64,000 nucleotides of DNA, from the sequence record OQ992562.1. One strand, given 5' to 3'. Both the position numbers and the translations under genes were made by a program. How positions within the stretch are numbered: position 1 is the first letter of the stretch; each line of letters starts with the position of its first letter. This document shows, in pieces, positions 1,882 to 50,380 of the stretch. The notes beneath the pieces were generated by a model. It searched no databases. It saw only the letters and a list, made by a program, of their open reading frames with translations, and was not told the origin of the DNA.

Positions 1882-1889
1882 TAGGAAAT

Positions 1890-2205
1890 ACCTCGGTAGA
1901 TAGGGATGTTAAATAAGTAACATCCCGATTCTAATACTGCGACCCTGGTTCACTTCGGTGATAACGGTTAGGAGTAGGTTCCGTGAAGTAATCGACTAGT
2001 GGACTTAGTCTAGGTCGACCTATCACTACACGAGGATGATAGATCACTTAACCGAAAGGAGTTACTCAAAAGGTAACGTGTGATCAAAAACTACAATGGA
2101 TGGTAAATGAGACTAGTGCCGGTATGCTACAAAGAAGAGCGGAGGTTAAGCTTTGTAGATGACGCTAGGCTCGGGCCAGGCTCCGTTGGTGGTCCATTGT
2201 AAAAA
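1890..2205 (+). ncRNA. Candidate structured RNA or long structured 3' UTR downstream of chimallin
   Basis: No ORF in the track; at least eight stems by eye, e.g. 1903-1910/1919-1926, 2042-2047/2080-2085, 2092-2100/2193-2201, 2127-2134/2151-2158, plus cUUCGg and GAAA tetraloops. Confidence 0.55.
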
Positions 2206-2207
2206 CT

Positions 2208-2250
2208 GATATAGCGGCTCCTTCGGGGGCCGCTTATATCTCCTTTTTTT
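2208..2250 (+). terminator. Rho-independent terminator after chimallin and the structured RNA
   Basis: GC-rich stem GCGGCTCC-TTCG-GGGGCCGC followed by T7. Confidence 0.9.
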
Positions 2251-2275: not shown

Positions 2276-3412
2276 ATGGGTCTTTATGCCAAAGTTGTTG
2301 ATCATGATGAAGTACATGATCAATTTACGGGTAAACGTATTTATGCCAATGATTACAATACGAGTAACTCAGATGAGAAAGAAGAATTTGATAGGCATTT
2401 CTATTCTCATTTCCAAGATTCAGAAGCAATTGAAAGTAGCGTAAGTTGTGATTGTCGAGCAATCGAAGACGCACATAAACTCGGAGTAATCTGTGATATT
2501 TGTAATACTCCAGTTGTCAATACTTCTAGCCGCCCTATCGAACCATCAATGTGGGTTCGTACACCAAAACATGTACGTAGTCTAATTAACCCACGTTTAA
2601 TCATTATGCTAACCGGATATCTAGTAACTAAAGAATTCGATTTCTTAGCATATCTAACTGATACTTCTTATCGATACGATGTGGAATCTATTGGTTCTAA
2701 AGAAACACGCAGAAAAGTAGATAGGCTACTGCATCGAGGATTTGAAAGAGGATTAAATCACTTCATTGATAATTTCAATGAGATCTTCCAATTCCTACTA
2801 GATGCAAATATTATTTCTAATAATAAATCCGAATTCGCTCAATTCGTTGCTCAGAATAAAGATAAGTTATTCCCTAAATATTTACCAGTTCCTTCTAAAC
2901 TCTGTTTCGTAGCAGAATCAACCACATCTGGTACTTACTTAGATAAACCAATTGAAGCAGCAATTGATGCTACCTTAACCTTCGCTAGTATTGATGCATC
3001 ATCTGTACCACTTAGTCCAATTAAAGCTCAGAATAGGACTATGCGAGGACTAAGACTATATGGCCAGTTCTACGAGATCTACGCAAAATCACGAATTGCT
3101 CAAAAGCCTGGTCTTGCTCGGCGTCACATGTTTGGTGCTCGTCTCAACGCTACGGCACGTGCAGTAATCACTTCTATTAGTGACCCGCATGATTATGATG
3201 AATTACATATCCCTTGGGGAGTAGGTTGTCAATTATTAAAGTATCATCTAACTAACAAGTTAAAAGCTAAGTTTAACATGACAACTCGTGAAGCATTCTC
3301 ATTTGTATATGAGAATGTACTTCAATATAACCAAATCATCGCTGATCTATTTAAAGAGTTAATTGCAGAGGCCGCACCATATAAAGGAATGGGTTGCACT
3401 TTTCACCGAAAT
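2276..3412 (+). CDS. Non-virion RNA polymerase beta-prime N-terminal subunit (phiKZ gp55-56.1 ortholog), exon 1 of 3; join(2276..3412,3718..3825,4319..4537) = 487 aa
   Basis: Zn-finger CDC..CDIC; ends at FHRN, which joins in frame to PTLQR of exon 2 (beta-prime NRxPTLHR motif); RBS AATAGGAG at 2262-2269. Confidence 0.9.
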
Positions 3413-3717
3413 TAATTTGTATATTAATACTAAATGGTTTCCTTGTAATAGAAATATTACTCGACAAAACTCCTTTAATTGCTGGGACATCTCATTGAGA
3501 CAATCAGCAGCGAAGCTTTCCAGAAATGGATTGAACGTTCAACGACTATCGAAAGGCACGAAAGTGAACCGAGTAGAGTAGAGTCAAGTGACTCGAAATG
3601 GGGAGCACCTTACTGGGTAATGCCAAAGGTGAAGATATAGTCTGGTCTGCATGGTGACATGCAGCTGTCTATTATTAATAGACGGGATAAGCTTAACGAA
3701 CTTATCTGAACACAACG
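3413..3717 (+). mobile_element. Group I intron 1 (305 nt, no ORF) in nvRNAP beta-prime
   Basis: P1 exon GAAAT/GTTTC (3437-3441) with U3412.G3437 wobble; P7 GACTAT (3544-3549)/ATAGTC; S element AAGATATAGTCT at 3632-3643; ends CTGAACACAACG with terminal G; removal restores the reading frame. Confidence 0.92.
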
Positions 3718-3825
3718 CCGACCCTTCAACGTGGATCTACTCAACAATTCTTTATTACTAAAGTAAAAGATGACATTAATGATAATTCAATCAGCATGTC
3801 AGTATTATGCCTTAAAGCGCCTAAT
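3718..3825 (+). CDS. nvRNAP beta-prime exon 2 (108-nt micro-exon, PTLQRGSTQQFFITKVKDDINDNSISMSVLCLKAPN)
   Basis: Manual translation; not in the ORF track; supplies PTLQR and the N of NADFDGD. Confidence 0.9.
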
Positions 3826-4318
3826 GGACAACTAACTAAATAAGGTAAAAACAATGGAACAAAACGGAGTAGTGTCCGTCTTTGATCCGGCTTCATTTAA
3901 AATTGAATATGAAGTGCTTGATAAATACCTTATTAAGTTAATCAAGTCTAGTTCCCCCAGTGAGTAATCATTGGGGTGAGTTTTCTCTAATTGCTGGGAT
4001 ATCCTGTTAAACTAATCTACCACTGCGAGTCGAAAGACAAAGCCAAGGTTTGAAAAAGATTAGGTAGGGCCAATCAGCAGCCAAGCTCCGTAACATTCCA
4101 TTTAGGAATAGGAGAAGGTTCAACGACTATTACGGTATCAGGTGCACCGGTCCTAGAAATAGGATGTAGGGTCAAGTGACTCGAAATGGGAGACACCCCA
4201 CTCCGAAAGGAAGGGTGAAGATATAGTCTGGTCTGCATGGTGACATGCAGCAGGTGGTAATTATCATGTGGTAATTATACTACCGGGTATGGATTAACGA
4301 CCCATACTGAACATAACG
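3826..4318 (+). mobile_element. Group I intron 2 (493 nt) splitting the catalytic N|ADFDGD motif
   Basis: TAATTGCTGGGA 3988-3999, TTCAACGACTAT 4119-4130, AAGATATAGTCT 4218-4229; ends CTGAACATAACG; removal gives AAT-GCG-GAT-TTT-GAC-GGC-GAT (NADFDGD). P1 not clearly resolved by eye. Confidence 0.92.
3854..3967 (+). pseudogene. 37-aa mini-ORF inside intron 2, probable remnant of a homing endonuclease gene
   Basis: RBS TAAGG at 3841-3845, ATG 3854, MEQNGVVSVFDPASFKIEYEVLDKYLIKLIKSSSPSE*; no nuclease motif left; remnant status is inferred from position. Confidence 0.5.
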
Positions 4319-4537
4319 GCGGATTTTGACGGCGATCAATTGAATTTAACGTTAATGCCTGATGTGTATTTAACTAAAGCAACTGAACGCATTGCTCCAC
4401 ATACATGGGTTCTATCTATTGATGAACCACATGAAATCTCAGGTAACCTTGAATTACAGGGTCCTGTTGTAGAAACGATTATTAACTGGGCGCATGAGAA
4501 GTATTTACCACCATTAGAAGAGTGGTTGAAGTCGTAA
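4319..4537 (+). CDS. nvRNAP beta-prime exon 3 (ADFDGDQLNLTLM...), phiKZ gp56.1-like
   Basis: Track ORF 4340..4537 extends upstream to GCG GAT TTT GAC GGC GAT, the Mg-binding DFDGD motif. Confidence 0.92.
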   Translation, partial: ADFDGDQLNLTLMPDVYLTKATERIAPHTWVLSIDEPHEISGNLELQGPVVETIINWAHEKYLPPLEEWLKS

Positions 4538-4547
4538 TAATAAACTT

Positions 4548-4580
4548 GCCCCTACCACTTATGTAGTAGGGGCTTTATTT
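4548..4580 (+). terminator. Rho-independent terminator
   Basis: GCCCCTAC/GTAGGGGC stem plus T-rich tail. Confidence 0.8.
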
Positions 4581-4628
4581 CCTGTTATGGCAGCGCCTAA
4601 CTATGGATGTAAAGTTCCACTGGATTTA

Positions 4629-4646
4629 ATTTCAGATTTATATCAC
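4629..4646 (+). promoter_or_regulatory. Early (virion RNAP) promoter-like motif
   Basis: TTTCAGATT-TATATCAC; matches the phiKZ early consensus TATATTAC and five other intergenic copies in this window. Confidence 0.65.
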
Positions 4647-4677
4647 TAAGATGCAATAGTGATAAGGGGAATACCCA

Positions 4678-4866
4678 ATGTCTAATATTCGTGAAATTAT
4701 TCGACGTAACCCGGAATGTTTATCACAAGTCGAACGAGATGAACGTGAAGCCAGATCGGTAGCCGTATTCACTAAGAGATATATTACTCGCGGGAATGGT
4801 GATGTAGTGGTAAACAGAAGGTTTGTCGATGCATATGTCGAAATGATATCTAAGCTTAATGATTAA
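4678..4866 (+). CDS. Hypothetical protein, 62 aa
   Basis: ORF with RBS AAGGG, directly after the early promoter motif. Confidence 0.7.
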   Translation: MSNIREIIRRNPECLSQVERDEREARSVAVFTKRYITRGNGDVVVNRRFVDAYVEMISKLND

Positions 4867-4926
4867 AAGCAAAATAAATTAATAGGGGAGTTTGAATCCA
4901 CCTATTAATTCTTTGAGGCTGGTAGT

Positions 4927-5310
4927 ATGCATGATTTAGTTATCTATTGGAAAGCCCATGATGGTTACTACATACAAGATGAATATGGCGAACATCCTGT
5001 AACTTTCCAATTCGCAGAAATTAATTGGAATTTCACTGGAGCGTATGTATACGGTGGTTCTGAATTAATTGATGATCACTTAAAATTTGGTATAGATTTC
5101 AAAGTACGTGATATTGAATGGCAAATTAGGTTTGATTTAGACGGTAAATTTACTCTGTACAATATGTCAAATAATGATCGGGATGATACCTTTGTAATTC
5201 CAGTTACTTCAAAATTTGCCCAATTCTTTAAAAAGACAGGCAAACATGTAGTTACTAATGAAGTTATCACTATCCCAGTTAATTGCTCTTTTGATAAGCA
5301 AATTTATTAA
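4927..5310 (+). CDS. Hypothetical protein (phiKZ gp57 position)
   Basis: 127-aa ORF, RBS GAGG, operon context. Confidence 0.75.
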   Translation: MHDLVIYWKAHDGYYIQDEYGEHPVTFQFAEINWNFTGAYVYGGSELIDDHLKFGIDFKVRDIEWQIRFDLDGKFTLYNMSNNDRDDTFVIPVTSKFAQFFKKTGKHVVTNEVITIPVNCSFDKQIY

Positions 5311-5322
5311 AGGTAAATAAGG

Positions 5323-5748
5323 ATGAATAGTAAATGTAATGAATGTACTAAGCAAATTGATAATTCCCACGATATGCCAAAAACACTTGGCATCTGCCAT
5401 AAGCATTATCGGTTCAATGTATTTGGGGATAATGATTTACTTAAAGATTCTGATAAACTGGTTACATTTGAACTTAATAAAGAAACTAATCTATTTGAAT
5501 GTATTCTAGAAAATACTAAAGGTGAATATACTGGATTTCATCATCCTAAGTTTGGATTCCGTATTAAACATGATGATCCAATCACTATTGTGGTGACTGC
5601 ACCTGAACATGATATCTATGTTGAATTAACTGTAACTGTTGAAGGTGTTACAAAAGCTGTCAATTGGTGCGGTCAGGAACTAGACACATTTAATTTACCT
5701 ATGCAACATCCGTTTAATCTATGCTGGTCATATACGGCCAATAACTGA
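5323..5748 (+). CDS. Hypothetical protein (phiKZ gp58 position), N-terminal CxxC...C-H
   Basis: 141-aa ORF, RBS AAGG. Confidence 0.75.
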   Translation: MNSKCNECTKQIDNSHDMPKTLGICHKHYRFNVFGDNDLLKDSDKLVTFELNKETNLFECILENTKGEYTGFHHPKFGFRIKHDDPITIVVTAPEHDIYVELTVTVEGVTKAVNWCGQELDTFNLPMQHPFNLCWSYTANN

Positions 5749-5756
5749 GGTGTATA

Positions 5757-6368
5757 ATGATTGTAGATGCACATGGTGTGGACCTCTTGGACATCTGTGC
5801 AGGTGGCCATCTTACACAGCAAACAACTCAATGGTTGGGTGAGCGTAGTCAGGCACTTCGTTCAACTATGTCAACTGCCGCTGCTAGCTTTTTCAATACT
5901 GCACAAAATATGTACAGTATGATTAGTGAATCAGCTGCTGTTCAAGCACTGCGGAATCTTACCACAAAGAAAGATAACTTATGGCAGTCGAACAACATTG
6001 TGTATCTTGAGACATTAGCTGAACTACAAACAGCTGGTCCGATTATGCAACGTTGGGTTATGGCACATGAGCGTCTAAGAACCATGTATCTTAATAATGA
6101 AGTTGATGGATATGGTGGTTCTTATAATAACATCCAAGGTGATGCGGTAGGTGAACGACAGTTTGATTATCGTCGCGTGATGGATGGAGTTATGTATACC
6201 GATAAGAAAGAATTCGGTTATAAAAACTATCACGAAGATATCAAGAGTGATCGTAAACTTAGCCTGCATGAAAAAGTTGACATCCTCCGTATGTGGAATG
6301 CTATTGATGGGCATCTAGACGCAGGCGAGGAAGATCCAACTTCAGTCGTAGGTAATCTTCTAGGTTAA
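5757..6368 (+). CDS. Conserved chimallivirus protein (phiKZ gp59 position; reported as nuclear import factor Imp3)
   Basis: 203-aa ORF, RBS GAGGTG; assignment by gene count between gp55 and gp68 and recall of the literature. Confidence 0.6.
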   Translation: MIVDAHGVDLLDICAGGHLTQQTTQWLGERSQALRSTMSTAAASFFNTAQNMYSMISESAAVQALRNLTTKKDNLWQSNNIVYLETLAELQTAGPIMQRWVMAHERLRTMYLNNEVDGYGGSYNNIQGDAVGERQFDYRRVMDGVMYTDKKEFGYKNYHEDIKSDRKLSLHEKVDILRMWNAIDGHLDAGEEDPTSVVGNLLG

Positions 6369-6374
6369 ATAAAT

Positions 6375-6400
6375 GAGAGTCCCATATAGGGACTCTCTTC
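6375..6400 (+). terminator. Terminator hairpin
   Basis: GAGAGTCCC-ATATA-GGGACTCTC. Confidence 0.75.
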
Positions 6401-6419
6401 TATCATTTAGGAGAGATCT

Positions 6420-6755
6420 ATGTCAATTGATCTACTCGTACCAAATAAACTAAAGATGTTTCAAAAAAGTCCAGATGGTACGGGATATATGTACTTTAAT
6501 AGTACAGATGGAATAGAACTTAAACACGACAATCAAACACGACTATTGTATCTTCCTGATAATGACTATGTAACTGGTGATTATGTTTCACCTGATGCTA
6601 AATTTATTTTCACAGTTATTGAAGGTGAAGTGGTCTCTATTAAATTAGATACTGGCGAGGAAATACATAGTTATAGTTTTTGTGATGAGAGTCCATTGTG
6701 GAACCATCCGCATATTGCTTTTTACGTTAAGGAAAATACTGATGCTATTAATTAA
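6420..6755 (+). CDS. Hypothetical protein (gp60 position)
   Basis: 111-aa ORF, RBS AGGAG. Confidence 0.75.
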   Translation: MSIDLLVPNKLKMFQKSPDGTGYMYFNSTDGIELKHDNQTRLLYLPDNDYVTGDYVSPDAKFIFTVIEGEVVSIKLDTGEEIHSYSFCDESPLWNHPHIAFYVKENTDAIN

Positions 6756-7194
6756 GAATAATAACTCATCAAAGCCACTACACCCTATCCTTAAATTAAC
6801 TACTGCTGTGGTTGATTCAACTCGTTTTAATCTTGAAGAATATTCTTATCTTAAAGAAGCATTTAAGAATGGTACTCTACGTATCTATGTGACTGGATAT
6901 GACTACGCTTACCCATCTGAAGATGGTCATCTTGTTATTAAAAACGACTATCCTAATGTGTCTAGCAGGCCACCATTTGTACATGTTGGTAGGGATCCAA
7001 ATGGGTTAACTGATGATACCCAGTTATATGTAGCCACAACTCATTTTTCAGGGACAAGTAGTGAAATTACTACCAGACCCACTAGTGTACATGCATGTGT
7101 TACTGAACACGATATCGTTTTAACAAGTACACTCAAGAAAAAAGAAGGTGCTGTTATCGTGTATCACATTGAATTAATTGCATGTAAATATTAG
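6742..7194 (+). CDS. Hypothetical protein (gp61 position); start re-called at ATG 6742
   Basis: RBS AAGGA at 6729-6733; same frame as track ORF 6682..7194. Confidence 0.7.
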   Translation: MLLIKNNNSSKPLHPILKLTTAVVDSTRFNLEEYSYLKEAFKNGTLRIYVTGYDYAYPSEDGHLVIKNDYPNVSSRPPFVHVGRDPNGLTDDTQLYVATTHFSGTSSEITTRPTSVHACVTEHDIVLTSTLKKKEGAVIVYHIELIACKY

Positions 7195-7242
7195 TATACT
7201 AGTTAATGTAAGTATTTAACTGTATGTATCAAGTAATATAAA

Positions 7243-7260
7243 GGGAGCCATTTGGCTCCC
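7243..7260 (+). terminator. Terminator hairpin
   Basis: GGGAGCCA-TT-TGGCTCCC; a T-run follows at about 7273-7280. Confidence 0.65.
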
Positions 7261-7267
7261 ATCTTAA

Positions 7268-7711
<444 letters not shown>

Positions 7712-8269
7712 ATGACTAGTGAAGTTGAACAAAATGAAAGCGAAGCTATGAACTCCATGCTATTAAAACGAATTCATATGCTAGAAGTAACAGTTAGGAA
7801 TCTAACGAAACATGCTAAAGTTATAGATGAGTCTTTCCAACAATTGGTAAAAGTTAAAGCTGAAGAAACTGCAACATTTAATATTCGCGTTAGTCGAGTT
7901 CTTGCAGATATTCTTTGCAATATGGGTGAAAGTATTCGGCGTGAAGTTGATGACGCAATGCGAGCTATCAATGGTGATACTAAACCAGTATTCTCACTAG
8001 TTGAAGTAGATGGAGTTAATCAGAAAGAACATATGGACTCGGTCATTGTTCGTAAAGGCGGTGATAAAGGTTATATGTTTGCTACTGTTGGAACACCTAA
8101 TAAGTTCACTACTGAAAACTGCGATGCGTTGATTGATTACCTAAATAGTAATCCTCAACTAATGGAAAACAAAGAAGAAGCTCGTTTTAATATCATCACT
8201 ACTCTGACTAAACAACAGATTGAACAAGTTATGGGTAAAGAAGATGGCAACTCCGGAACCGAACACTAG
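7712..8269 (+). CDS. Hypothetical protein (gp63 position)
   Basis: 185-aa ORF abutting the upstream stop codon. Confidence 0.75.
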   Translation: MTSEVEQNESEAMNSMLLKRIHMLEVTVRNLTKHAKVIDESFQQLVKVKAEETATFNIRVSRVLADILCNMGESIRREVDDAMRAINGDTKPVFSLVEVDGVNQKEHMDSVIVRKGGDKGYMFATVGTPNKFTTENCDALIDYLNSNPQLMENKEEARFNIITTLTKQQIEQVMGKEDGNSGTEH

Positions 8270-10911: not shown

Positions 10912-11652
10912 ATGTCACAACAGCAGTCTAATGCACCCGTAGTTAACCCTTTTAATGTAATGAATACTTGGCTACATGCCAAACCATGTGAGGGTTCTCA
11001 AAAACGACCGACGCTGCGTTTTGGTCTGTTTAAAAACCAACCACGGGTTACTGTTCGTACTAATGTACCTGGTGATAAAGACCATGGTAAAATTGAGTTC
11101 AATACTGACCTAGCAACCTTTGCATGTTTCATTAAGTTTGCAATGGACTTAATTGAAGGTAAAACTGAAGATACTGAACGTGTCTTTGTTTACCGCAATA
11201 ACTTCGTAGCTGGTAAGAAGCGTGATAATTTTATTGAGCTTTCTAAGCTACATGTTGGCCGTGCACAAGATGGTCGAATTTACATCGCAGTGCTAAGCAC
11301 TCAACCTGATCGTCCAAAGATCAAATTCTTCTTTGGCCCATCCCAATTCCATGATATCCGCAAAGCAGATGGTAGTCAACTATCACCTAAGGAAATGTCC
11401 GATGCTTATGCATACGGTTTCCTAGACCCCGCATATAAACTAGTAATGCATCTTCTAGTAACTGAATTCGATCCAGATGCTAAAGGTGTATCTAACCCTG
11501 CTAATTTCAATCAGGGTAATGGTAATAGCGGCGGTTACAATAACGGTGGTCAGCGCAATAACTATAACAACGGCGGCAATAATAGTTATGCTAAGCCGGC
11601 TAATAATAGTTATAATGACTCAGCTTTTGATGAGGATATGCCTTCCTTCTAA
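10912..11652 (+). CDS. chmC: ChmC-like nucleus-associated RNA-binding protein (Whirly-like fold with N/G-rich tail; gp67 position, also reported as Imp6)
   Basis: 246 aa, beta-rich core then GNGNSGGYNNGGQRNNYNNGGNN tail and acidic DEDMPSF end; immediately upstream of the sigma-like and PicA genes. Confidence 0.65.
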   Translation: MSQQQSNAPVVNPFNVMNTWLHAKPCEGSQKRPTLRFGLFKNQPRVTVRTNVPGDKDHGKIEFNTDLATFACFIKFAMDLIEGKTEDTERVFVYRNNFVAGKKRDNFIELSKLHVGRAQDGRIYIAVLSTQPDRPKIKFFFGPSQFHDIRKADGSQLSPKEMSDAYAYGFLDPAYKLVMHLLVTEFDPDAKGVSNPANFNQGNGNSGGYNNGGQRNNYNNGGNNSYAKPANNSYNDSAFDEDMPSF

Positions 11653-16849: not shown

Positions 16850-16969
16850 ATGAGATTGGTGATACCAGACATTGAAGTCTTACAAAAGGCTATATCTAAA
16901 AACAGCGCAAATAAGAAATATAGTAGTACTGCATCTTGTCTAATTAATGGTGATAAACAAAATGGCTGA
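16850..16969 (+). CDS. 39-aa leader ORF overlapping the nvRNAP beta start
   Basis: RBS AGGAGG at 16843-16848, ATG 16850, stop TGA 16967-16969 within ATGGCTGA; below the track size cutoff. Confidence 0.6.
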   Translation: MRLVIPDIEVLQKAISKNSANKKYSSTASCLINGDKQNG

Positions 16970-18140
16970 ACTAGGTAAACGTGAAATTGATCTAACCCTA
17001 TTAGGGCATACTGGTTTAGATCCTTGGTATGGCACTACCTCATCTGCACGGGGTGCTATGTTTGTAACACATATTGGCCAGGCACCAGAAGTAAATGGAA
17101 ATGAATCGCGTTATTTCCTAACGGGTGCTGAATTAGAGTATGCCAAGTATACACATGATGTTCGTTTTCCTGAGGATTGTCGTGTACTACATGTTCTTAG
17201 AAAATATCCAACGGGTATTGGTAAAGACAGTATTAGATCTAACCCGGTAACAACTATTATCTACGAAAACTATTTTGACAAATATAAAACCATTGGTGTC
17301 TTACATGTTCCCGAGTACATGAGTCATCACCAAGACTTTGGTTATGAACTTGTAAAGAATCGAGAAGTGTGGGAAACCATTGCCCCAAATGAAATGTTCT
17401 CTAAAGACACAGTGATTGCACAGTCTGGTGCAGTTAAGAAAGACGGTACTTTAGGGATGGGTGTTAATGCTAATGTTGTATTCCTATCTGCCGCTGGTAC
17501 CATTGAAGATGGATTCGTAGCTAATAAGAATTTCCTTAAAAGGATGATGCCAACTAGTTATAGCACGGCTGTAGCTAATGCTGGTAGGAAAGCTTTCTTC
17601 TTAAACATGTATGGCGATGATAAGGTCTATAAACCATTCCCAGACATTGGCGATGTTATCCGACCAGATGGTGTAATCTTCGCCATCCGTGACCATGATG
17701 ATGATCTAGCTCCTGCCGAGATGACTCCTAGGGCACTTCGTACACTAGATAGAACTTTCGATAGAGCTGTTATTGGCACACCTGGTGCGAAGGTTATTGA
17801 TATTGATATTTGGCGTGATGAGCGTGTAAATCCATCCCCTACTCCAACAGGAATGGATGCACAACTAGTTAAATATCATACTCATCTTAGCAGTTATTAT
17901 CGAGAACTATTAAAGATCTATCGTGGTCTATTAGCACGTCGTAAAGATGATCTACATATCACTGAGGAATTTGAACGTCTTATTGTAACTGCACAGATGT
18001 TCCTACCTCAACCTGATAATGTCCGTAAACTATCTCGATTCTATCGACTAGACCCACTAGATGAATGGCGAGTCGAAGTAACTTACAAAGCCCAAAAGAT
18101 GCCTGCTGGTGCTTTCAAGATGACTGATTTTCATGGTGGT
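16962..18140 (+). CDS. nvRNAP beta subunit (phiKZ gp71-73 ortholog), exon 1; join(16962..18140,18448..19371) = 700 aa
   Basis: Beta motifs such as GTIEDG; ends at FHGG, which joins KGVICK (RHGNKG-type motif); alternative start 16947. Confidence 0.9.
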
Positions 18141-18447
18141 AATTAATATCCATCCATCTCTCAGGAATGGATATTGTCAAATTGCCTGCTTGATCTCGAA
18201 AGAGTCAAGTAAATCCTCTCTAATTGCTGGGACATCTCAATGAGACAATCAGCAGCGAAGCTTTCCAGAAATGGATTGAACGTTCAACGACTATCCGGTT
18301 ACGCGGAGTACACTCAAGCGAGTGGAAATGGGAGGGACCTGACCACCTAGGGTGAAGGTTAAGATATAGTCTGGTCTGCATGGTGACATGCAGCTGCCTG
18401 CAATACGAGAGGCGGGGTAAGCGTAGCGAACTTACCTGAACATAACG
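18141..18447 (+). mobile_element. Group I intron 3 (307 nt, no ORF) in nvRNAP beta
   Basis: P1 GGT|AATT pairs with AATTGCC (18180-18186), placing the U.G wobble at U18140; TTCAACGACTAT 18283-18294; AAGATATAGTCT 18361-18372; ends CTGAACATAACG. Confidence 0.92.
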
Positions 18448-19371
18448 AAGGGCGTCATCTGTAAGGTAATGGAAGATGAAGATATGCCTATTGACGAAAA
18501 TGGTAATAGGGCAGATCTAATTATCTTTGGTGGTTCAACCATGCGTCGTTCAAATTATGGTCGAATTTATGAACATGGTTTTGGCGCAGCTGCACGAGAT
18601 CTAGCTCAACGCCTACGCGTTGAAGCTGGACTAGATCGACATGCCAAACCAACCCAGCAACAACTAAATAGTGTAATGGGTAATACGCAATGGGTTGATT
18701 ATGCATTTAAAGAACTATTAGGTTTCTATGAGATCATTGCTCCAACAATGCATAGTAAAATGATGGAACACCCAAATCCAGCAGAACATGTTAAAACAGT
18801 ACTAATGGATGGATTCCCATATATCTACGCACCAGTTGATGATCCAGTGGATCTAATGGCAGCAGTCAACAAATTAATTAATAGCGATAAGTATCGACCA
18901 CACTATGGGAAGGTATCTTATCGAGATCAAGCTGGTAAGTGGGTAACAACTAAAGATAATGTCTTAATGGGTCCACTTTACATGATGCTACTAGAAAAGA
19001 TTGGTGAAGACTGGTCAGCAGCAGCATCTGTAAAAACACAACCATTTGGTCTACCTTCTAAGTTAAACAATGCTGATAGGGCTAGCACACCTGGTCGAGA
19101 AACAGCTATCCGGTCATTCGGTGAATCTGAAACTCGGTCATATAACTGTACAGTTGGTCCAGGTCCGACTGCTGAAATCTTAGACCAAACTAATAACCCA
19201 TTGGCGCATGCTGCGGTTATCGAGTCTTGGCTAACAGCAGAAAAACCTTCATCTGTACCAGTTGCAGTTGATCGTGAAAAGATTCCATTTGGTGGATCTC
19301 GCCCAGTAGCTATGTTTGATCACCTGCTTGAATGTAGTGGTATTGCATTAGAATATGCCCCTGATCATTGA
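18448..19371 (+). CDS. nvRNAP beta subunit exon 2 (KGVICKVMEDED...)
   Basis: Track ORF 18469..19371 extends 7 codons upstream to the intron end; motifs RSNYGRIYE, GPLYMMLL, RSFGESE. Confidence 0.9.
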   Translation, partial: KGVICKVMEDEDMPIDENGNRADLIIFGGSTMRRSNYGRIYEHGFGAAARDLAQRLRVEAGLDRHAKPTQQQLNSVMGNTQWVDYAFKELLGFYEIIAPTMHSKMMEHPNPAEHVKTVLMDGFPYIYAPVDDPVDLMAAVNKLINSDKYRPHYGKVSYRDQAGKWVTTKDNVLMGPLYMMLLEKIGEDWSAAASVKTQPFGLPSKLNNADRASTPGRETAIRSFGESETRSYNCTVGPGPTAEILDQTNNPLAHAAVIESWLTAEKPSSVPVAVDREKIPFGGSRPVAMFDHLLECSGIALEYAPDH

Positions 19372-44426: not shown

Positions 44427-45749
44427 ATGACTAATAATTCACTTAGTCATTCGGTCTTACTTGAATCAATCGACGGGGACAGCCCCGTCGATATGATCGC
44501 TACATGCGATGGATATCTAAAAGAATTATTGCCATCAATTGAAGATATTCAAAGTAGATTAGAATGCACTGAAAAAGACATTTTAGTTAAAACCTATACC
44601 GATGGCTTATTTCAAAAATATGCAGATAACCAAGATGTTGTTAGTGAACACATTCTAAAAACTGAGAATGTGTCATTAGAAGACCTATCTAAGACAGCAC
44701 GAAATACCTGGGATGAAATGAAAAAATCCCAAGCAAAGCATCGAGATGAGTTAAAAGAGTATGCACGTGTTATTACACAAGGTAATCAACGTACTCTTGA
44801 ACGAATAAACATGCTTTTAGAAAGAGCTGAAAATATTAAGCATGAGCCATTTAAGCAAGAATTAAAATTTAAAAATACTAAACGATTTAGTATTGATGGT
44901 AAATTCGAACCGACTACAGTTGATCCGATACTCATGCAAGTTAACAACTTGATAGCTTTCTATGATAAATCCCTACTCTTGTATATCCAATCTGTAGCGG
45001 ATATCCTTAGGAAATTATCATTTGATGAAAAATGGACTGATAGAGCTGCACAAGACTTTAGTAAGTTTAATGTTAAGAACTGGATGAAGGGTGCAGTACC
45101 TATTAAGAAAGATGATAGATTTAGAGTAAGTTCTACAGTTTATCGTAGTATGCCAGTTCAAGGTAATAAGACTTTATTTGGCGCAGGGCCAACTGAAACA
45201 CAGACTGAAGAGATCAGGGATTGGGATTTTTTAGTAAATACTGTCCGTGATTTTGCCTTTAAGTTTTATACTATTCCTACTATGAAGGATGCACCTGAAG
45301 GTAACAATACCTTTAAGGTTAATGATACGAGTTCAATTGGAAGACGGTTAGTATTATTAAGCGAAATGGCTAAACGTATAGATGCTAGAAAAGATTATGC
45401 AACTAAACTAGATTTTGAATTTGGTAGGTTAATGCAGTTAGCCGAGACTAATCGTCAACAAGCTGGTAGGATTCGGGCACAACAATCTAATATGCGAAAT
45501 CGTCAAGCAAAAGTTCAAGATCCTGATGCACCTGATGGCATCCCTGCTATCTCAAATATCATTAATTCAATTACATTAATGATCAATAATGTAAGTCGCG
45601 TTGTAACAGATTTTAGTAATGCTCTTGCTGGTTTAGTCAGAGTAATGGGTCGACTAGTATTCGTGACCGAGTTAGAATTAAAAGCTTACCAGCGTCCAAT
45701 TCAAAGACCTACGCAAGAACAAGTAAATAATCCCTCCCAGGTAAGGTAA
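44427..45749 (+). CDS. Internal head protein (gp92 position)
   Basis: 440 aa; SLED processing-type site near residue 85. Confidence 0.7.
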   Translation: MTNNSLSHSVLLESIDGDSPVDMIATCDGYLKELLPSIEDIQSRLECTEKDILVKTYTDGLFQKYADNQDVVSEHILKTENVSLEDLSKTARNTWDEMKKSQAKHRDELKEYARVITQGNQRTLERINMLLERAENIKHEPFKQELKFKNTKRFSIDGKFEPTTVDPILMQVNNLIAFYDKSLLLYIQSVADILRKLSFDEKWTDRAAQDFSKFNVKNWMKGAVPIKKDDRFRVSSTVYRSMPVQGNKTLFGAGPTETQTEEIRDWDFLVNTVRDFAFKFYTIPTMKDAPEGNNTFKVNDTSSIGRRLVLLSEMAKRIDARKDYATKLDFEFGRLMQLAETNRQQAGRIRAQQSNMRNRQAKVQDPDAPDGIPAISNIINSITLMINNVSRVVTDFSNALAGLVRVMGRLVFVTELELKAYQRPIQRPTQEQVNNPSQVR

Positions 45750-45754
45750 TTAAC

Positions 45755-47062
45755 ATGTCTCTACTTAAAATGCTAGACAAACTATCACTTGAATCAATTG
45801 AAGATCAAGGCACTACGATTCATGGTGATGTTGAATTAGTCGTTGAAAATAAAACTTCTGCTGATGTATCATCCGTTTTAGCAGAAGTAGATCAGATTGA
45901 AAATAATCCCGTAGAAGAAGTTCTTGATGCAGATGATGCTATTCAACCAACTGCATTAGATACTGAAGTAACTATTGTTCAAGCTGAAGATGAATTAGGG
46001 CTAATTGAAGATGCTAAAGAAGCACTTGAAAAGTTCCAAGGTCTTTTACTTCAAGCTGGTGAAGATGGTATCTCTCGACAAGCAGCTGCCTTCATGCATG
46101 TTGGCATGGAATCAATCGATCGTATCCTAGGTATTGAAAAATCTGGACTCACTGCCGCGCTTGAGAATTACGATGCTTCTCCACGCAGCGCTATTCAGAA
46201 AGCAGCTGTTATCTCTCTTGAGGATCTCAAAGAGAAACTAAAAGAAGCAGGTAAGAAAGCTTTAGAGATTATCAAGAAAATTGTTGCAATGATAAAGCAG
46301 AAGATTAAAGATTTTAATCCTAAGCTGATTGCACTCGATATGCGTATTACTAAAACTATTGATGCTATTAAATCACTCAAAGCCGGTGATCTAAAGAAAG
46401 AAGAGATTAAGTTCACTCCTTCTGAGTATATGGTATCTAGTAGTGGCTTTATTGCAAATAATCCGAAGACTATTGCAGACTTCATGACTGTATTCTCAAC
46501 TCAGTATGTATCTGCTCTTAGGAAATATGGCGAACTTGGAGTACGTTATCTCAAAGGTGACAAGTCTATTGATATTGATCAAGTCACCAGTGATTTACAA
46601 GCTAAGATGGCTGAAGATATTAATAAAGCCGTTGAGAAAGCTCCTGGTAATGTTAAGTTAGAAGTTACTTCTTCTAAGTCAGGTGTGAATAAGTGGGAAG
46701 TTGTTGAGGGTGATGGGGAAACGGATCTACATGAAGTTGAAGTTGATGTCCGTGCACCGAGTAAAATCTTAGCACATCTTAATATTCTTAAAGGTCTTGT
46801 TATTAAACTACAGGACTTTAATAAGATTGATTACAAGATTGCTGAGAATCTTGAAAAGGCCCTAGCTGATTGGAATCCTGACGAAGCAGGCATGTCAAAA
46901 GAAACAGCGCGTGATGCACTGAATATTGGTGGTATTGATAATAGTGCACTAGTTAACTATATTGCTAAATGCATCGCTGCGCAGTATACATTTATTGTTA
47001 AACATGAATTAGCTGCGTACGGCAAAGAAACTTCTAAAGCATCTGAGAATGATGAGAAGTAA
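45755..47062 (+). CDS. phiKZ-like internal head protein, paralog family (gp93 position)
   Basis: Shared family segment GISRQAAAFMH...ALENY...SLED. Confidence 0.8.
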   Translation: MSLLKMLDKLSLESIEDQGTTIHGDVELVVENKTSADVSSVLAEVDQIENNPVEEVLDADDAIQPTALDTEVTIVQAEDELGLIEDAKEALEKFQGLLLQAGEDGISRQAAAFMHVGMESIDRILGIEKSGLTAALENYDASPRSAIQKAAVISLEDLKEKLKEAGKKALEIIKKIVAMIKQKIKDFNPKLIALDMRITKTIDAIKSLKAGDLKKEEIKFTPSEYMVSSSGFIANNPKTIADFMTVFSTQYVSALRKYGELGVRYLKGDKSIDIDQVTSDLQAKMAEDINKAVEKAPGNVKLEVTSSKSGVNKWEVVEGDGETDLHEVEVDVRAPSKILAHLNILKGLVIKLQDFNKIDYKIAENLEKALADWNPDEAGMSKETARDALNIGGIDNSALVNYIAKCIAAQYTFIVKHELAAYGKETSKASENDEK

Positions 47063-47066
47063 CAAA

Positions 47067-47099
47067 CATAATGAGGAACCCTTCGGGGTTCCTCTTATG
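47067..47099 (+). terminator. Terminator hairpin flanked by CATAA/TTATG
   Basis: GAGGAACCC-TTCG-GGGTTCCTC. Confidence 0.85.
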
Positions 47100-47131
47100 C
47101 TATGTAATTAAGTATTCTTGAGGAATTGTAA

Positions 47132-48649
47132 ATGAACTTAAATAAGTTACTTGATAGTTTAGAAGGTTATGGTGTTGTCGAAGTAAAAGAAAAAGTCGCG
47201 AAAGCCAAACTAAAGCACGCTGCTACAGACGACAAGCAAATATCTAAAGAACCAGAAGAAGCTGCCAAATTAATTGATGAATTACCAAATGATGTAAAAG
47301 CAACTAATAATGGGTTAGATGTTGAAGAAGCACATAAACCTAATATCCATTGGAAATCAGATCGTGGTTTAGTTACTGAAGTTGATTCATTTGGTAAAAC
47401 ATACGTCGCATCAGAAGAATATCCAGCATCACCCCATGATACCCGAGAAAGTCCTGATAATAGACCTACACCAGTGGATGGTAAAGATTTAGATAGTGAT
47501 GATGATCATTTAAATATCTTTGCGTATGATGCACCTCCATCTCAAAACATGACATATCAGCTAAATCAATTACTGCATGCGCGTACTAGTTTAGAATGTT
47601 TTATAGATTTATTAAATACCGCTGGTGATAGAGGTATTACTAAACAATCAGCTGCTTTTATGCACGTTACATTAGAATCAATTGATAAGCTTATCGGCTT
47701 TGAAAAGATTAGTATTGAAGATTTTAATGCAACCCCTAGCAGCGCTATGCGTTTTGTAAATATTTCTCAAGAAGAAATAAAAGAACGTATTGAAAGTATA
47801 GGTAAAAAGATACTTGCTTTAATAGTCCATGTTATTGAACAAGCTAAAGTAGCGGCACAGCGTGTACTAACTGGAATCAAATCAGTTGAAGATAAAACTG
47901 ATGAGTTAATTGAAAAAGCGAAAAGTTTAATCAATAAGCCAACTGTATCAAATGAAAGGGTAACACCTGATTTTGATATGTCAATTAAAATTGACAATCC
48001 TAAAATGTTATTCATTGGTGATGAATTTGTTTTAGACGATTTAACTAATGAAACAAAAGTTAGTCAATTTCTAGCTAAAGAATGGCCAAATATAGCTAGA
48101 TCAAACATTGATAAAGTAGTTAAATTAATTAAAGACTACGACTTAGAAGATAATGAACTAGATAAGTTTAAAGAGGCTTTTGAATTTATTGGTGAAGCTA
48201 ATCAGTTAGATAAAGTAAAAGATACTTCTCTACCTGGTAATAGTAAACTTATATTCCAGAAAGATAAATATGCTCCACGACTTGGTGAAGATAAACATGG
48301 TGATGGTCCAGATACAATCACGATCGAGCCAAGGCCGCCTGTTGAAGTGCGTAAAACATTAGAAGTTAATAAAGAAGCTATTCGTCGTTTAGGTGATCTA
48401 TTTAAAGCTGAAAAAGATGTCCTTGAACAACTGAAGAAGGTTGCACAGGGCATTGAGGACATGGAGCTACGTAGGTCTAAAGCTATTTGGAAAGGTGCTC
48501 GTGATGATGCAAATGAGATTATATCTTTAGTTAATGGCTTTATTACCGATATGTCACCAGAATACGCAACACTAATTAGTTACCTATTACGTATTGCAAA
48601 GCAACGAAATGCTGTTTGTAATATGGAATTAGAAAGATATGGCCAATAA
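47132..48649 (+). CDS. Internal head protein paralog (gp94 position)
   Basis: GITKQSAAFMH...SIEDF...SQEE segment homologous to the gp93-like protein. Confidence 0.8.
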   Translation: MNLNKLLDSLEGYGVVEVKEKVAKAKLKHAATDDKQISKEPEEAAKLIDELPNDVKATNNGLDVEEAHKPNIHWKSDRGLVTEVDSFGKTYVASEEYPASPHDTRESPDNRPTPVDGKDLDSDDDHLNIFAYDAPPSQNMTYQLNQLLHARTSLECFIDLLNTAGDRGITKQSAAFMHVTLESIDKLIGFEKISIEDFNATPSSAMRFVNISQEEIKERIESIGKKILALIVHVIEQAKVAAQRVLTGIKSVEDKTDELIEKAKSLINKPTVSNERVTPDFDMSIKIDNPKMLFIGDEFVLDDLTNETKVSQFLAKEWPNIARSNIDKVVKLIKDYDLEDNELDKFKEAFEFIGEANQLDKVKDTSLPGNSKLIFQKDKYAPRLGEDKHGDGPDTITIEPRPPVEVRKTLEVNKEAIRRLGDLFKAEKDVLEQLKKVAQGIEDMELRRSKAIWKGARDDANEIISLVNGFITDMSPEYATLISYLLRIAKQRNAVCNMELERYGQ

Positions 48650-48736
48650 ATATATCTAAGTGTTCATTTTTATCTAAGTACCTAATTCTATGGTTTATTG
48701 TTAAACGCGCGCAAAGAAATTCCTTGAGGAAATAAC

Positions 48737-50380
48737 ATGACATTTAAACTCAATGAGTATCTAGATAGTCTAGAAGACTATACTGAGGTACCTATTCCTG
48801 AAACAGCAGTTGATAAAGTAGCAGCCATGACTAGTGGCGATTGTATTTCTGAAGACGCTGTACCTGAAAATACTATTCAAGATGTGACTGACAATAATGT
48901 TGGTGTAACACCAACTGCACCAGTGGATGCAGATACCACTATTGTTAATACTCCTAATAATGGCGTTATTGTTGAGACTCCAGCTGCTACTCTAGTTGAA
49001 CAACCAGCTGTACCAGTTACCGTAGTTGAAACAGATGTAGTAACAGAAGTACCCCCTATTCCTGAACAACCTAATATTGCTGTTGAAACAGTTATTCCAG
49101 CAGGTGCCGAAGGAGAGGAACCACAAGGTGGTGAAACAGTAACTCAGCAAATCGCTGATCAGGCTGCCAAAGATAGTTCTATTCCACTAGCGCATAATGG
49201 CGTGGTGCCACAGATCGCTGTTGCAGTGGATATGGATAAACCTACTGATTTCATGGACATTGGTAATGCACAAGTAGTTACTACAGCAGTGCAAGATATT
49301 AATCAAGGTCTAAATACCGCATATGCCCTAGAGTCGATTAAAGCTCTTGTTCGACAAGCTGGTATTAATGGTATCAGTCAAAGTACAGCTGCATTTATTC
49401 ATTCTGCACTCTTACCACATCGTCATGTACTTGGTGATAATACTTTAACTAGCTCATTAGAAAACTATACGACTGGTGGTAAAAGTCATTTATATCCAGT
49501 TAAGATTTCAACTGAGGATATTAAAGAGTTAAGTCGTAAGGCGCTTGCTTATATCAAGAAAGCTATTGCTAAACTACGTGAAATTATTAGCCACGTATGG
49601 GATAGTCTTAAGAATAGTGTACCGCGTGTGAGTGTAAAAGTTGATGAACTCATTTTAGCTATCCAAAATGCTAAGTTTGAAAATATACCCAGTGAATTAA
49701 CGGTTCCTGTTAAAAATGGTGGACCCGTATTTGCTAATGGTAAATTCATTCAGCCTTCAGCTAACGTTGGATATGGCCCTATCGTTAAATGGATGGCATC
49801 TGTATATGCAAAAGACTATGCTACCTACCTAACGAATATTGGTACTGTGCTTAAAGCTTGGGATCCAGAGCGTAATGATGCTAGTGAACTAGTTGAGAAG
49901 ATGGACAAACTTCAAGATGGACCTCTCAAACACTACGCTAGTACATCTAACACTTTACCGGGTAATAAGCTTGTAACTACGACTGCTACTCAAGTATATC
50001 TAACGGATGATGAGACAGCCGCAGAACCTGGCACTGAAGTGACTTTAAAGAACTTTGATAAGAGTCAAGCTAAGAAAGAAGCGGTAGCTCTACGTAATCT
50101 GGTTGATGATGCAGCTGATGTTATCACTGGCGGTCGGAATATTGTTAAAGCCATTAAGCAACTTGAAGATGATGTTGATCAACTTTCACGGAAACTAGAG
50201 AGTGATAAAATCGACGATGTTTCTAAAGAACAGATCGAAGAAGTATCACGTAAGGTAGCATCTATTATTACAGATAGTGCACCTAAACATGACTCCATTA
50301 TTCGTGAAGCAATGCGTTACGCAAATACTGCAACTGGACTTTATAATAGTGTAATTAACACTAAATTCCAAGCAGAATAA
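48737..50380 (+). CDS. Internal head protein paralog (gp95 position)
   Basis: GISQSTAAFIH...SLENY...STED segment; Pro/Val/Glu-rich propeptide. Confidence 0.8.
   Translation: MTFKLNEYLDSLEDYTEVPIPETAVDKVAAMTSGDCISEDAVPENTIQDVTDNNVGVTPTAPVDADTTIVNTPNNGVIVETPAATLVEQPAVPVTVVETDVVTEVPPIPEQPNIAVETVIPAGAEGEEPQGGETVTQQIADQAAKDSSIPLAHNGVVPQIAVAVDMDKPTDFMDIGNAQVVTTAVQDINQGLNTAYALESIKALVRQAGINGISQSTAAFIHSALLPHRHVLGDNTLTSSLENYTTGGKSHLYPVKISTEDIKELSRKALAYIKKAIAKLREIISHVWDSLKNSVPRVSVKVDELILAIQNAKFENIPSELTVPVKNGGPVFANGKFIQPSANVGYGPIVKWMASVYAKDYATYLTNIGTVLKAWDPERNDASELVEKMDKLQDGPLKHYASTSNTLPGNKLVTTTATQVYLTDDETAAEPGTEVTLKNFDKSQAKKEAVALRNLVDDAADVITGGRNIVKAIKQLEDDVDQLSRKLESDKIDDVSKEQIEEVSRKVASIITDSAPKHDSIIREAMRYANTATGLYNSVINTKFQAE

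Follow-up and report, generated by a model that had tools for sequence, protein, structure and literature searches.

The RNAs ncRNA1 and ncRNA2 of phage PAK_P3 have no mapped transcription start site (TSS), have been attributed to processing of 3' untranslated regions (3'-UTRs) and were confirmed by northern blotting (PMC10914365). In phiKZ, a species of ~ 100 nucleotides (nt) downstream of PHIKZ298, '3'UTR_PHIKZ298', was also confirmed by northern blotting (PMC8545117), and was later reassigned to processing of the 5'-UTR of PHIKZ297 (PMC10914365). These RNAs are abundant late in infection (PMC10914365, PMC8545117). Here we describe an element in a 64 000-nt stretch of sequence record OQ992562.1 (the window, to whose first letter all positions refer unless stated otherwise), located immediately downstream of chmA, the gene for chimallin, the protein of the phage's nuclear shell. 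Positions 1882–2250 are a genuine, conserved, non-coding and highly structured RNA with three modules, which we call D1, D2 and D3; each folds independently, and they are stacked directly before an intrinsic terminator. The element resembles the RNAs of PAK_P3 and PHIKZ298 in having no TSS of its own, in ending at the terminator of the upstream gene, in being structured and in being conserved within the genus (PMC10914365, PMC8545117). Those RNAs, however, are 100–210 nt long with one or two hairpins, whereas the chmA element measures ~ 330 nt, comprises three junction modules, is conserved across genera and is subject to cassette exchange.

The element folds to a minimum free energy of –123.7 kcal/mol (z = –3.9), and none of 100 dinucleotide shuffles was equally stable. 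A consensus fold was derived from nine homologues with RNAalifold, and gave the following features:

1892–2034, + strand: D1, a four-way junction in the RNAalifold consensus, with the closing helix 1892–1895/2031–2034 and three arms
1897–1900/1930–1933 and 1903–1911/1918–1926, + strand: arm 1 of D1, consensus fold
1935–1944/1966–1976 and 1950–1953/1958–1961, + strand: arm 2 of D1, with a UUCG loop, consensus fold
1983–1988/2020–2026 and 1992–2004/2008–2018, + strand: arm 3 of D1, consensus fold
2042–2085, + strand: D2, a small three-way junction, with helix 2042–2047/2080–2085, the CC-GAAA-GG hairpin 2052–2059 and the hairpin 2061–2066/2072–2077
2094–2199, + strand: D3, a three-way junction, with closing helix 2094–2101/2192–2199
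2109–2118/2163–2172 and 2125–2134/2151–2161, + strand: the long arm of D3, with an invariant apical loop
2175–2179/2186–2190, + strand: the short, invariant hairpin of D3, consensus fold
2140–2144 with 2181–2185, + strand: candidate loop–loop (kissing) contact within D3, CGGAG with CUCCG, both pentamers invariant in 12 of 12 sequences

An earlier note, made by reading the letters of the window, had proposed a large, modular, structured non-coding RNA at this place, and both the stability of the fold and the strong covariation described below bear this out. Nearly all of the stems that it drew match the consensus structure. The one that does not, 2021–2025/2037–2041, is possible in the window sequence but is lost in relatives, and covariation supports the pairing 1983–1988/2020–2026 together with the closing helix 1892–1895/2031–2034 in its place; it is this closing helix that makes D1 a four-way junction. 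Two repeats that the note had pointed out, GACTAGTG at 1994 and 2111 and AAAAACT at 2086 and 2201, are indeed present here but are conserved neither within the phiKZ group nor in Pawinskivirus, and because they fail to hold even within the phiKZ group we regard them as lineage-specific coincidences. The D3 loops GGUAAA, AGAGCGGAGG and CCAGGCUCCGUUGG are invariant across very distant phages, and a small apical helix of D3 (2138–2140/2145–2147) is disrupted in one relative, which retains CGGAG.

The covariation analysis for which the earlier note had called supports these folds. For D2 and D3 together, 25 of 50 pairs show compensatory double changes in a 12-sequence alignment, in which pairing is kept in 99.3% of cells; of 500 shuffles, none was as good, and slid registers gave at most three compensatory pairs, a margin that is large even though the alignment was fitted to a covariance model and so favours the structure. 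By module, compensatory changes were found at 10 of the 14 pairs in helices 1–3, which form D2 (alignment A7), and at 15 of the 28 in helices 4–6, which form D3 (12 sequences, including two metagenomic phages). D1, for which a plain MAFFT alignment was used, has fewer (five of 47 pairs), but 99.2% of its cells are paired, against 30–44% in slid controls. The covarying pairs of D1 fall one each in five of its seven helices; the other two, helices 4 and 5 of the P3 arm, do not vary.

BLAST searches found the element in 47 genomes of the phiKZ group (95–100% identity) and in seven Pawinskivirus-type genomes (~ 85%); phiHQ shows part of it, and PhiPA3 the terminator only. Between phiKZ and Pawinskivirus, the nucleotide identity of the element is 83%, compared with 62% for the last 900 nt of chmA and 66% for the first 900 nt of the polymerase gene that follows, and the chimallin proteins of the two groups are 48.8% identical. 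Covariance models built for D1 and for D2 with D3 pick up parts of D1 and D2 in PhiPA3, and recover D3 in two metagenomic jumbo-phage contigs, L026 and L037 (69 and 86 bits), whose flanking genes are ~ 61–64% identical to those of phiKZ and the window at the nucleotide level. By inspection, the D1 of PhiPA3 keeps the four-way architecture with wholly different arm sequences and with a GAAA loop in place of UUCG. Judged from these comparisons of sequence, the element is a selected RNA structure, and neither a gene nor, very probably, a relic.

The genes on either side are those named in the earlier note. Upstream, chmA occupies the open reading frame (ORF) 1–1881 on the + strand, with its ATG at the start of the window; its product matches the Pfam family PF25677 (Chimallin_Phikzvirus) over the full length with E = 0 and is 99.5% identical in amino acid sequence to PHIKZ054. 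The reading frame closes with tandem in-frame stops, TAA TAG (1879–1884). The next genuine gene, 2276–3415, lies beyond a spacer of 394 nt and encodes the N-terminal part of the nvRNAP (non-virion RNA polymerase) beta' subunit, a homologue of gp55 (PHROG 2987, 'RNA polymerase beta subunit', 3e-145). The window sequence is identical to that of Pseudomonas phage PhiPizzaParty and, in the element region, 99.7% identical to that of phiKZ; adding 45647 to a window coordinate gives the phiKZ coordinate. Two further features complete the spacer:

2208–2250, + strand: intrinsic terminator, a 14-bp hairpin with a UUCG loop (2208–2240), then UCC and U7 (2244–2250)
2265–2278, + strand: Shine–Dalgarno sequence AGGAG (2265–2269) and ATG (2276) of the gp55 homologue, from reading of the sequence

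The transcript maps of phiKZ define what kind of RNA this is. ONT-cappable-seq (Oxford Nanopore Technologies) places TSSs upstream of chmA at phiKZ positions 44937, 45377, 45490 and 45583 and the next only at 49168, and transcription units from the chmA promoters end at the termination site T025 or read through to T028 at 52650 (bioRxiv 10.1101/2023.10.13.562163). T025 itself, at 47888, which is window position 2241, is listed as 'intrinsic' with –16.7 kcal/mol (Putzeys et al., bioRxiv 10.1101/2023.10.13.562163). There is no TSS inside the chmA–polymerase spacer in the published phiKZ maps (none from 45583 to 49168). Because it has no start of its own and shares with the upstream mRNA a 3' end at the terminator, the element is the 3'-UTR of chmA mRNA, where the earlier note had placed it: it is the tail of each chmA transcript that stops at T025 and an internal spacer in read-through transcripts. 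As the next TSS lies at 49168, the gp55-homologue gene is expressed only via read-through of T025, with which the co-transcription of chmA and the nvRNAP gene stated in PMC12571901 agrees. The terminator, also called in the earlier note, combines a G+C-rich hairpin, a U-tract and the mapped 3' end; a simple consensus terminator scanner missed it because a 3-nt spacer separates the hairpin from the U-tract. It is 97% identical to that of PhiPA3 over 39 nt, which is unusually strong for a terminator. No other part of the spacer is as widely conserved among Pseudomonas chimalliviruses as the block of terminator hairpin, U-tract and ribosome-binding site (2226–2275), which is present also in loci L001, L011, L013, L022, L025–L027, L029 and L031 of our comparison. 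The CUCC between hairpin and U-tract is kept in the aligned phiKZ, Pawinskivirus and PhiPA3 sequences, and other bases stand there in the Psa21-type terminator.

The earlier note could match the element to no RNA class, and the Rfam search that it had suggested agrees. With Rfam 15 (4227 models) at E ≤ 10, there was no match inside 1882–2199, and the five weak matches within 1700–2400 (13–20 bits, against gathering thresholds of 45–90) all lie at or beyond the terminator; the same run, which thereby provides a positive control for sensitivity, detected three group I introns at other places in the window (76–87 bits). The loci or spacers of eight relatives gave nothing at E ≤ 1, and ARAGORN found no tRNA or tmRNA gene in the whole window. 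A group I intron was considered and rejected: the model RF00028 is silent on the element, which sits after a stop codon and outside any ORF. No description of the element in phiKZ turned up in full-text searches of the literature, the nearest being one sentence in Enustun et al. 2024 (PMC11077065). The element is a new RNA family, absent from Rfam and, in the deposited genomes examined, either unannotated or mis-annotated as tiny ORFs. Thus, OQ992562.1 carries small 'hypothetical protein' coding sequences (CDSs) at 1931–2047 (– strand) and 2107–2202 (+ strand), as well as within the introns (3417–4866), and the records of HPP-Temi and HHBS36_1 likewise place small CDSs within the element. A protein-coding role was rejected, because only this lineage has ATG 2107, the ORF on the minus strand is cut short in PA7 and missing from Pawinskivirus, and no frame is common to the relatives; being unconserved, the annotated CDSs are in all probability artefacts of gene calling. 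By inspection, we also set aside a small ORF that would follow the GGAGG of the D3 loop, its ATG (2159) being missing in SL2, PA7 and Pawinskivirus.

Searches for further copies showed the element to be single-copy: covariance models run on the window and on the remaining 218 kb of phiKZ found no second one. Pattern scans of IMG/VR for D1, D2 and D3 returned only PA7, PhiPA3 and two uncultivated viral genomes (UViGs), always downstream of chmA. A 23-base D3 pattern matched four contigs of metagenome-assembled genomes (MAGs), but within GC-rich ORFs and with no match to the model; three of the four are orthologues of one Spirochaetia gene, and we attribute these matches to chance rather than to a bacterial origin or host mimicry of D3. 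Five metagenome matches to a D2 pattern included one weak model match (12 bits), and the two that were inspected are ordinary ribosome-binding-site contexts. An enriched D3 model, R3, to which the UViG sequences had been added, found no D3 in 21 other chimallin loci, and a weak match in Phabio (13 bits) did not recur with it. Two further ideas were discarded: a sponge for RsmA/CsrA-type proteins, whose GGA motifs are by inspection unconserved in PhiPA3, and a tetraloop–receptor contact of the D2 GAAA loop, which in PhiPA3 is not a GNRA loop.

Comparison of 30 chimallin loci shows that the 3' site of chmA is an accessory cassette, in which modules are lost, gained and swapped between relatives by recombination in the stretch bounded by the end of chmA and the terminator, both of them conserved. 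Between chmA and the polymerase gene lie 12 to 681 nt, and the sole block common to most loci is the terminator with the ribosome-binding site. The contents of the site are as follows:

phiKZ group and Pawinskivirus: D1-D2-D3
PhiPA3: D1 with an insertion, D2, and a different last module that is not D3
phiHQ: D1 replaced by an unrelated module of ~ 310 nt, module B, with flanks 99.7–99.9% identical to those of PS119XW
Psa21-like clade (flanks 82–95% identical): nothing in D6 (87 nt), module B in Psa21, D3 alone in L026, a D2-like unit with D3 in L037, or other structured sequences

At this same position 3' of chmA, module B represents another conserved structured RNA, unrelated to the first. 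It was located at 694–1000 in the locus of phiHQ, a Pseudomonas aeruginosa phage (L003), and at 3256–3600 in that of Psa21, a Pseudomonas syringae phage (L011); the two spacers share 73% identity along 156 nt (E = 3e-21), comparison of the copies shows compensatory changes at 11 of 40 predicted pairs, and no Rfam family matches. A D2-like unit is also seen in Psa21. PhiPA3 (L001) has a structured insertion of ~ 170 nt within one D1 arm, at ~ 1165–1330 of its locus, and neither this insertion nor its last module had a match among the other loci compared. The modules always lie between the chmA stop and the terminator, and D3, the most widely shared unit, is always the one adjacent to the terminator. 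The earlier note had contained neither this exchange of modules, nor the wide sharing of D3, nor the reliance of the polymerase gene on read-through. Spacers longer than ~ 140 nt have z values of –2.7 to –6.7 relative to shuffles, the sole exception being L036 (150 nt, z = –1.1), and several chimalliviruses have a spacer of 80–90 nt; those with 84–87 nt still encode a full-length chimallin. Some relatives carry small ORFs at the site. Within the phiKZ species group, the element is 95–96% identical and D3 88–90%, compared with 99–100% for the flanks, and the D3 of SL2 and PA7 is nearer to that of Pawinskivirus than to that of the window; this higher variability and this affinity point to exchange.

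Mobile RNAs are also present in the transcription unit itself. The gp55-homologue gene (region 2276–4537) is split into three exons, ~ 2276–3412, 3706–3828 and 4319–4531, between which lie two ORF-less group I introns, 3415–3664 and 3930–4250 (RF00028, 87 and 76 bits); the deposited annotation gives here a truncated protein of 379 amino acids and, on both strands, a series of tiny ORFs. The third group I intron, 18165–18393 (RF00028, 84 bits), lies between the ORFs 16947–18146 and 18469–19371 and probably interrupts another gene. The base composition also changes at this point of the window, chmA and its 3'-UTR having 45–50% G+C and the following genes 29–43% (1–1881 compared with 2276–8000). 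CTA leucine codons, judged by eye, are heavily used in chmA, suggesting that codon use in this gene, which is very highly expressed, follows a regime of its own.

As to function, we tentatively favour, with a probability of about 0.4, a cis-acting, decay-resistant, protein-bound 3' end that stabilizes chmA mRNA and leaves a stable fragment. This is preferred because of the strict position between stop and terminator, because non-homologous structured modules occupy the same site and because the whole class of spacer is structured; what matters for function seems to be position, and structure in a general sense. Lying behind the terminator hairpin, the compact folds, with D3 perhaps locked by the loop–loop contact, would hinder 3'-to-5' exonucleases, and slowed decay would lengthen the life of chmA, the most heavily used early/middle message. 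Degradation of the mRNA body would then leave behind a stable fragment of the 3'-UTR, with RNA-binding proteins, ChmC for instance, bound to it. In PhiPA3, enhanced crosslinking and immunoprecipitation (eCLIP) of ChmC gave short, discrete peaks of high coverage between chmA and gp54, which the authors read as small regulatory RNAs (PMC11077065); survival of such a fragment would explain them. Several points weigh against a decay-resistant end. The nuclease resistance and the longer half-life of chmA mRNA are properties that we infer, and the eCLIP data come from PhiPA3, whose last module is not D3. A number of chimalliviruses manage with the 80–90 nt spacer and no module. The invariant D3 loops suggest sequence-specific recognition by a partner rather than generic stability, and the greater variability of the element than of its flanks in the phiKZ group is more in keeping with exchange or an arms race than with a housekeeping role in cis. 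In addition, phiKZ already inhibits the host degradosome with Dip.

Invariant loops combined with a patchy, horizontal distribution would fit a specific partner in trans better, and the strongest rival is accordingly a cassette of trans-acting non-coding RNAs: the modules, D3 in particular, would be accessory RNA 'genes' carried by the strongest early/middle transcription unit and, once processed, would bind a specific host or phage factor as a sponge, a counter-defence decoy or a scaffold for a ribonucleoprotein (RNP). The moron-like pattern of presence and absence in the Psa21-like clade, the sharing of D3 between clades whose flanks have diverged to ~ 61–64%, the invariance of its single-stranded motifs, a turnover in the phiKZ group faster than that of the flanks, and the interpretation given to the eCLIP peaks by their authors (PMC11077065) all speak for this. 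Yet the element has no promoter of its own, is invariably linked in cis to chmA with the same terminator following it, and was not found elsewhere in the phiKZ genome, in IMG/VR or in bacterial genomes, so that we consider a trans-acting role possible but doubtful. An extended form of the idea, to which we would give no greater weight, makes the 3' end of chmA a 'landing pad' at which nucleus-forming phages collect and exchange trans-acting structured RNAs, D3 being the most widely shared, and makes these a new RNA class specific to Chimalliviridae; carried on the most abundant early message, such RNAs might bind a host or phage factor, whether as counter-defence decoys or as ChmC-dependent RNP, export or localization tags.

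The remaining explanations appear weaker. The order of structured RNA, terminator, ribosome-binding site and gene is that expected of a leader or attenuator, riboswitch-like or protein-sensing, that would tune passage through T025 into the nvRNAP subunit gene, and the TSS maps leave the gp55 homologue dependent on read-through (PMC12571901). Moreover, the loop of the D3 hairpin repeats the GGCUCC of the terminator 5' strand and could compete for its 3' strand, the candidate alternative pairing being GGCUCC 2179–2184 with GGGGCC 2226–2231 (6 bp, invariant, by inspection). Those 6 bp would, however, have to displace a 14-bp hairpin, no known aptamer class is matched in Rfam and unrelated modules substitute for one another; the terminator and ribosome-binding-site block is kept in relatives without any module, which implies that attenuation does not need the modules, and we think such a regulator unlikely. 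The earlier note had offered, as an alternative to a stable non-coding RNA, a zipcode or export signal, by which the tail would send chmA mRNA to or through the shell, or to localized translation, via ChmC or ChmA. The element is specific to the chmA message, and ChmC is encoded nearby, its homologue (10912–11652, 54% identical to PhiPA3 gp61) lying ~ 9 kb downstream as the note had said. The suggestion that ChmC may bind here draws support from the eCLIP peaks in the homologous PhiPA3 spacer, and knock-down of ChmC traps mRNAs in the nucleus; specificity is another matter, since most phage mRNAs are targets of ChmC, which contacts them chiefly around start codons, and no motif was found (PMC11077065). 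The relatives with 84–87 nt spacers make the same shell protein, and pairing of the 5'-UTR with the 3'-UTR is at chance level, the best duplexes for such a cyclization being no better than shuffles (p ~ 0.13 and 0.45). Early chmA mRNA also predates the shell, being made at the early phage infection (EPI) vesicle stage. This stage is mentioned in PMC12571901. Taken together, these observations weaken the export and localization ideas to the point of being improbable. Least credible of all is the idea that the sequence is selfish or a relic, namely a mobile intron that has degenerated or a gene that has decayed, tolerated in a non-essential spacer with no function of its own. The abundance of mobile RNAs nearby (of the three group I introns in the window, two lie no more than 2 kb downstream), the cassette-like gain and loss, and the small ORFs found at the site in some relatives might suggest it. 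The group I model, however, finds the three true introns and nothing for the element at E ≤ 10, 99% of pairs are maintained by compensatory substitutions, the element is more conserved than the essential genes beside it and the relatives share no reading frame.

Nucleus-forming jumbo phages are defined by chimallin, whose mRNA is a known point of vulnerability, at which Cas13 and antisense oligomers are directed. That this message carries an RNA backed by covariation and more conserved than the protein preceding it offers a handle on the amount and lifetime of the shell message and on the ratio of chmA to nvRNAP set by read-through, as well as a natural explanation for the unexplained ChmC eCLIP peaks of PhiPA3. 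It is also a rare instance, in a lytic phage, of RNA cassettes that are modular and are exchanged horizontally. For annotation, the calling of ORFs within the element should stop. Existing phiKZ tools, namely antisense peptide nucleic acids (PNAs), Cas13-assisted engineering and ONT or Term-seq, make the element directly testable.

Among known systems, the decay-resistant end that we favour has its analogue in the flavivirus 3'-UTR, in which exonuclease-resistant RNAs (xrRNAs) give rise to subgenomic flaviviral RNA (sfRNA): there, an exonuclease is halted by compact pseudoknotted folds, and a stable fragment that binds protein persists. By analogy, both would be tandem, independently folding, partly duplicated or exchangeable modules of a viral 3'-UTR; the flavivirus modules, however, block the 5'-to-3' enzyme Xrn1, whereas the chmA element would face 3'-to-5' exonucleases, and the two have no similarity in sequence or in Rfam. 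Riboswitch and attenuator leaders likewise place a structured RNA directly before a terminator that gates a promoterless downstream gene, but the element has no known aptamer match or convincing anti-terminator pairing, and relatives keep the terminator without the modules. Group I introns in phiKZ-like phages are comparable to the element in size and, like it, are large structured RNAs, and two of them lie in the same transcription unit (3415–3664 and 3930–4250); they are mobile among related phages, whereas the element stands outside any ORF, is unseen by RF00028 and has no recognizable P3–P7 core. The ROOL and GOLLD RNAs are, like the element, big, multi-domain, phage-borne and supported by covariation, with a function likewise unassigned, but they are 500–800 nt long, belong to other bacterial phyla and usually lie near tRNA genes, whereas the element is bound to chmA and has no match in Rfam. 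In kind, the element is thus, as far as its sequence and the phiKZ maps can tell, closest to the 3'-UTR-derived stable RNAs of phages, a separate processed species being putative here, and it is unusual in its size, its multi-domain architecture, its cross-genus conservation above that of the flanking essential genes and its exchange as cassettes.

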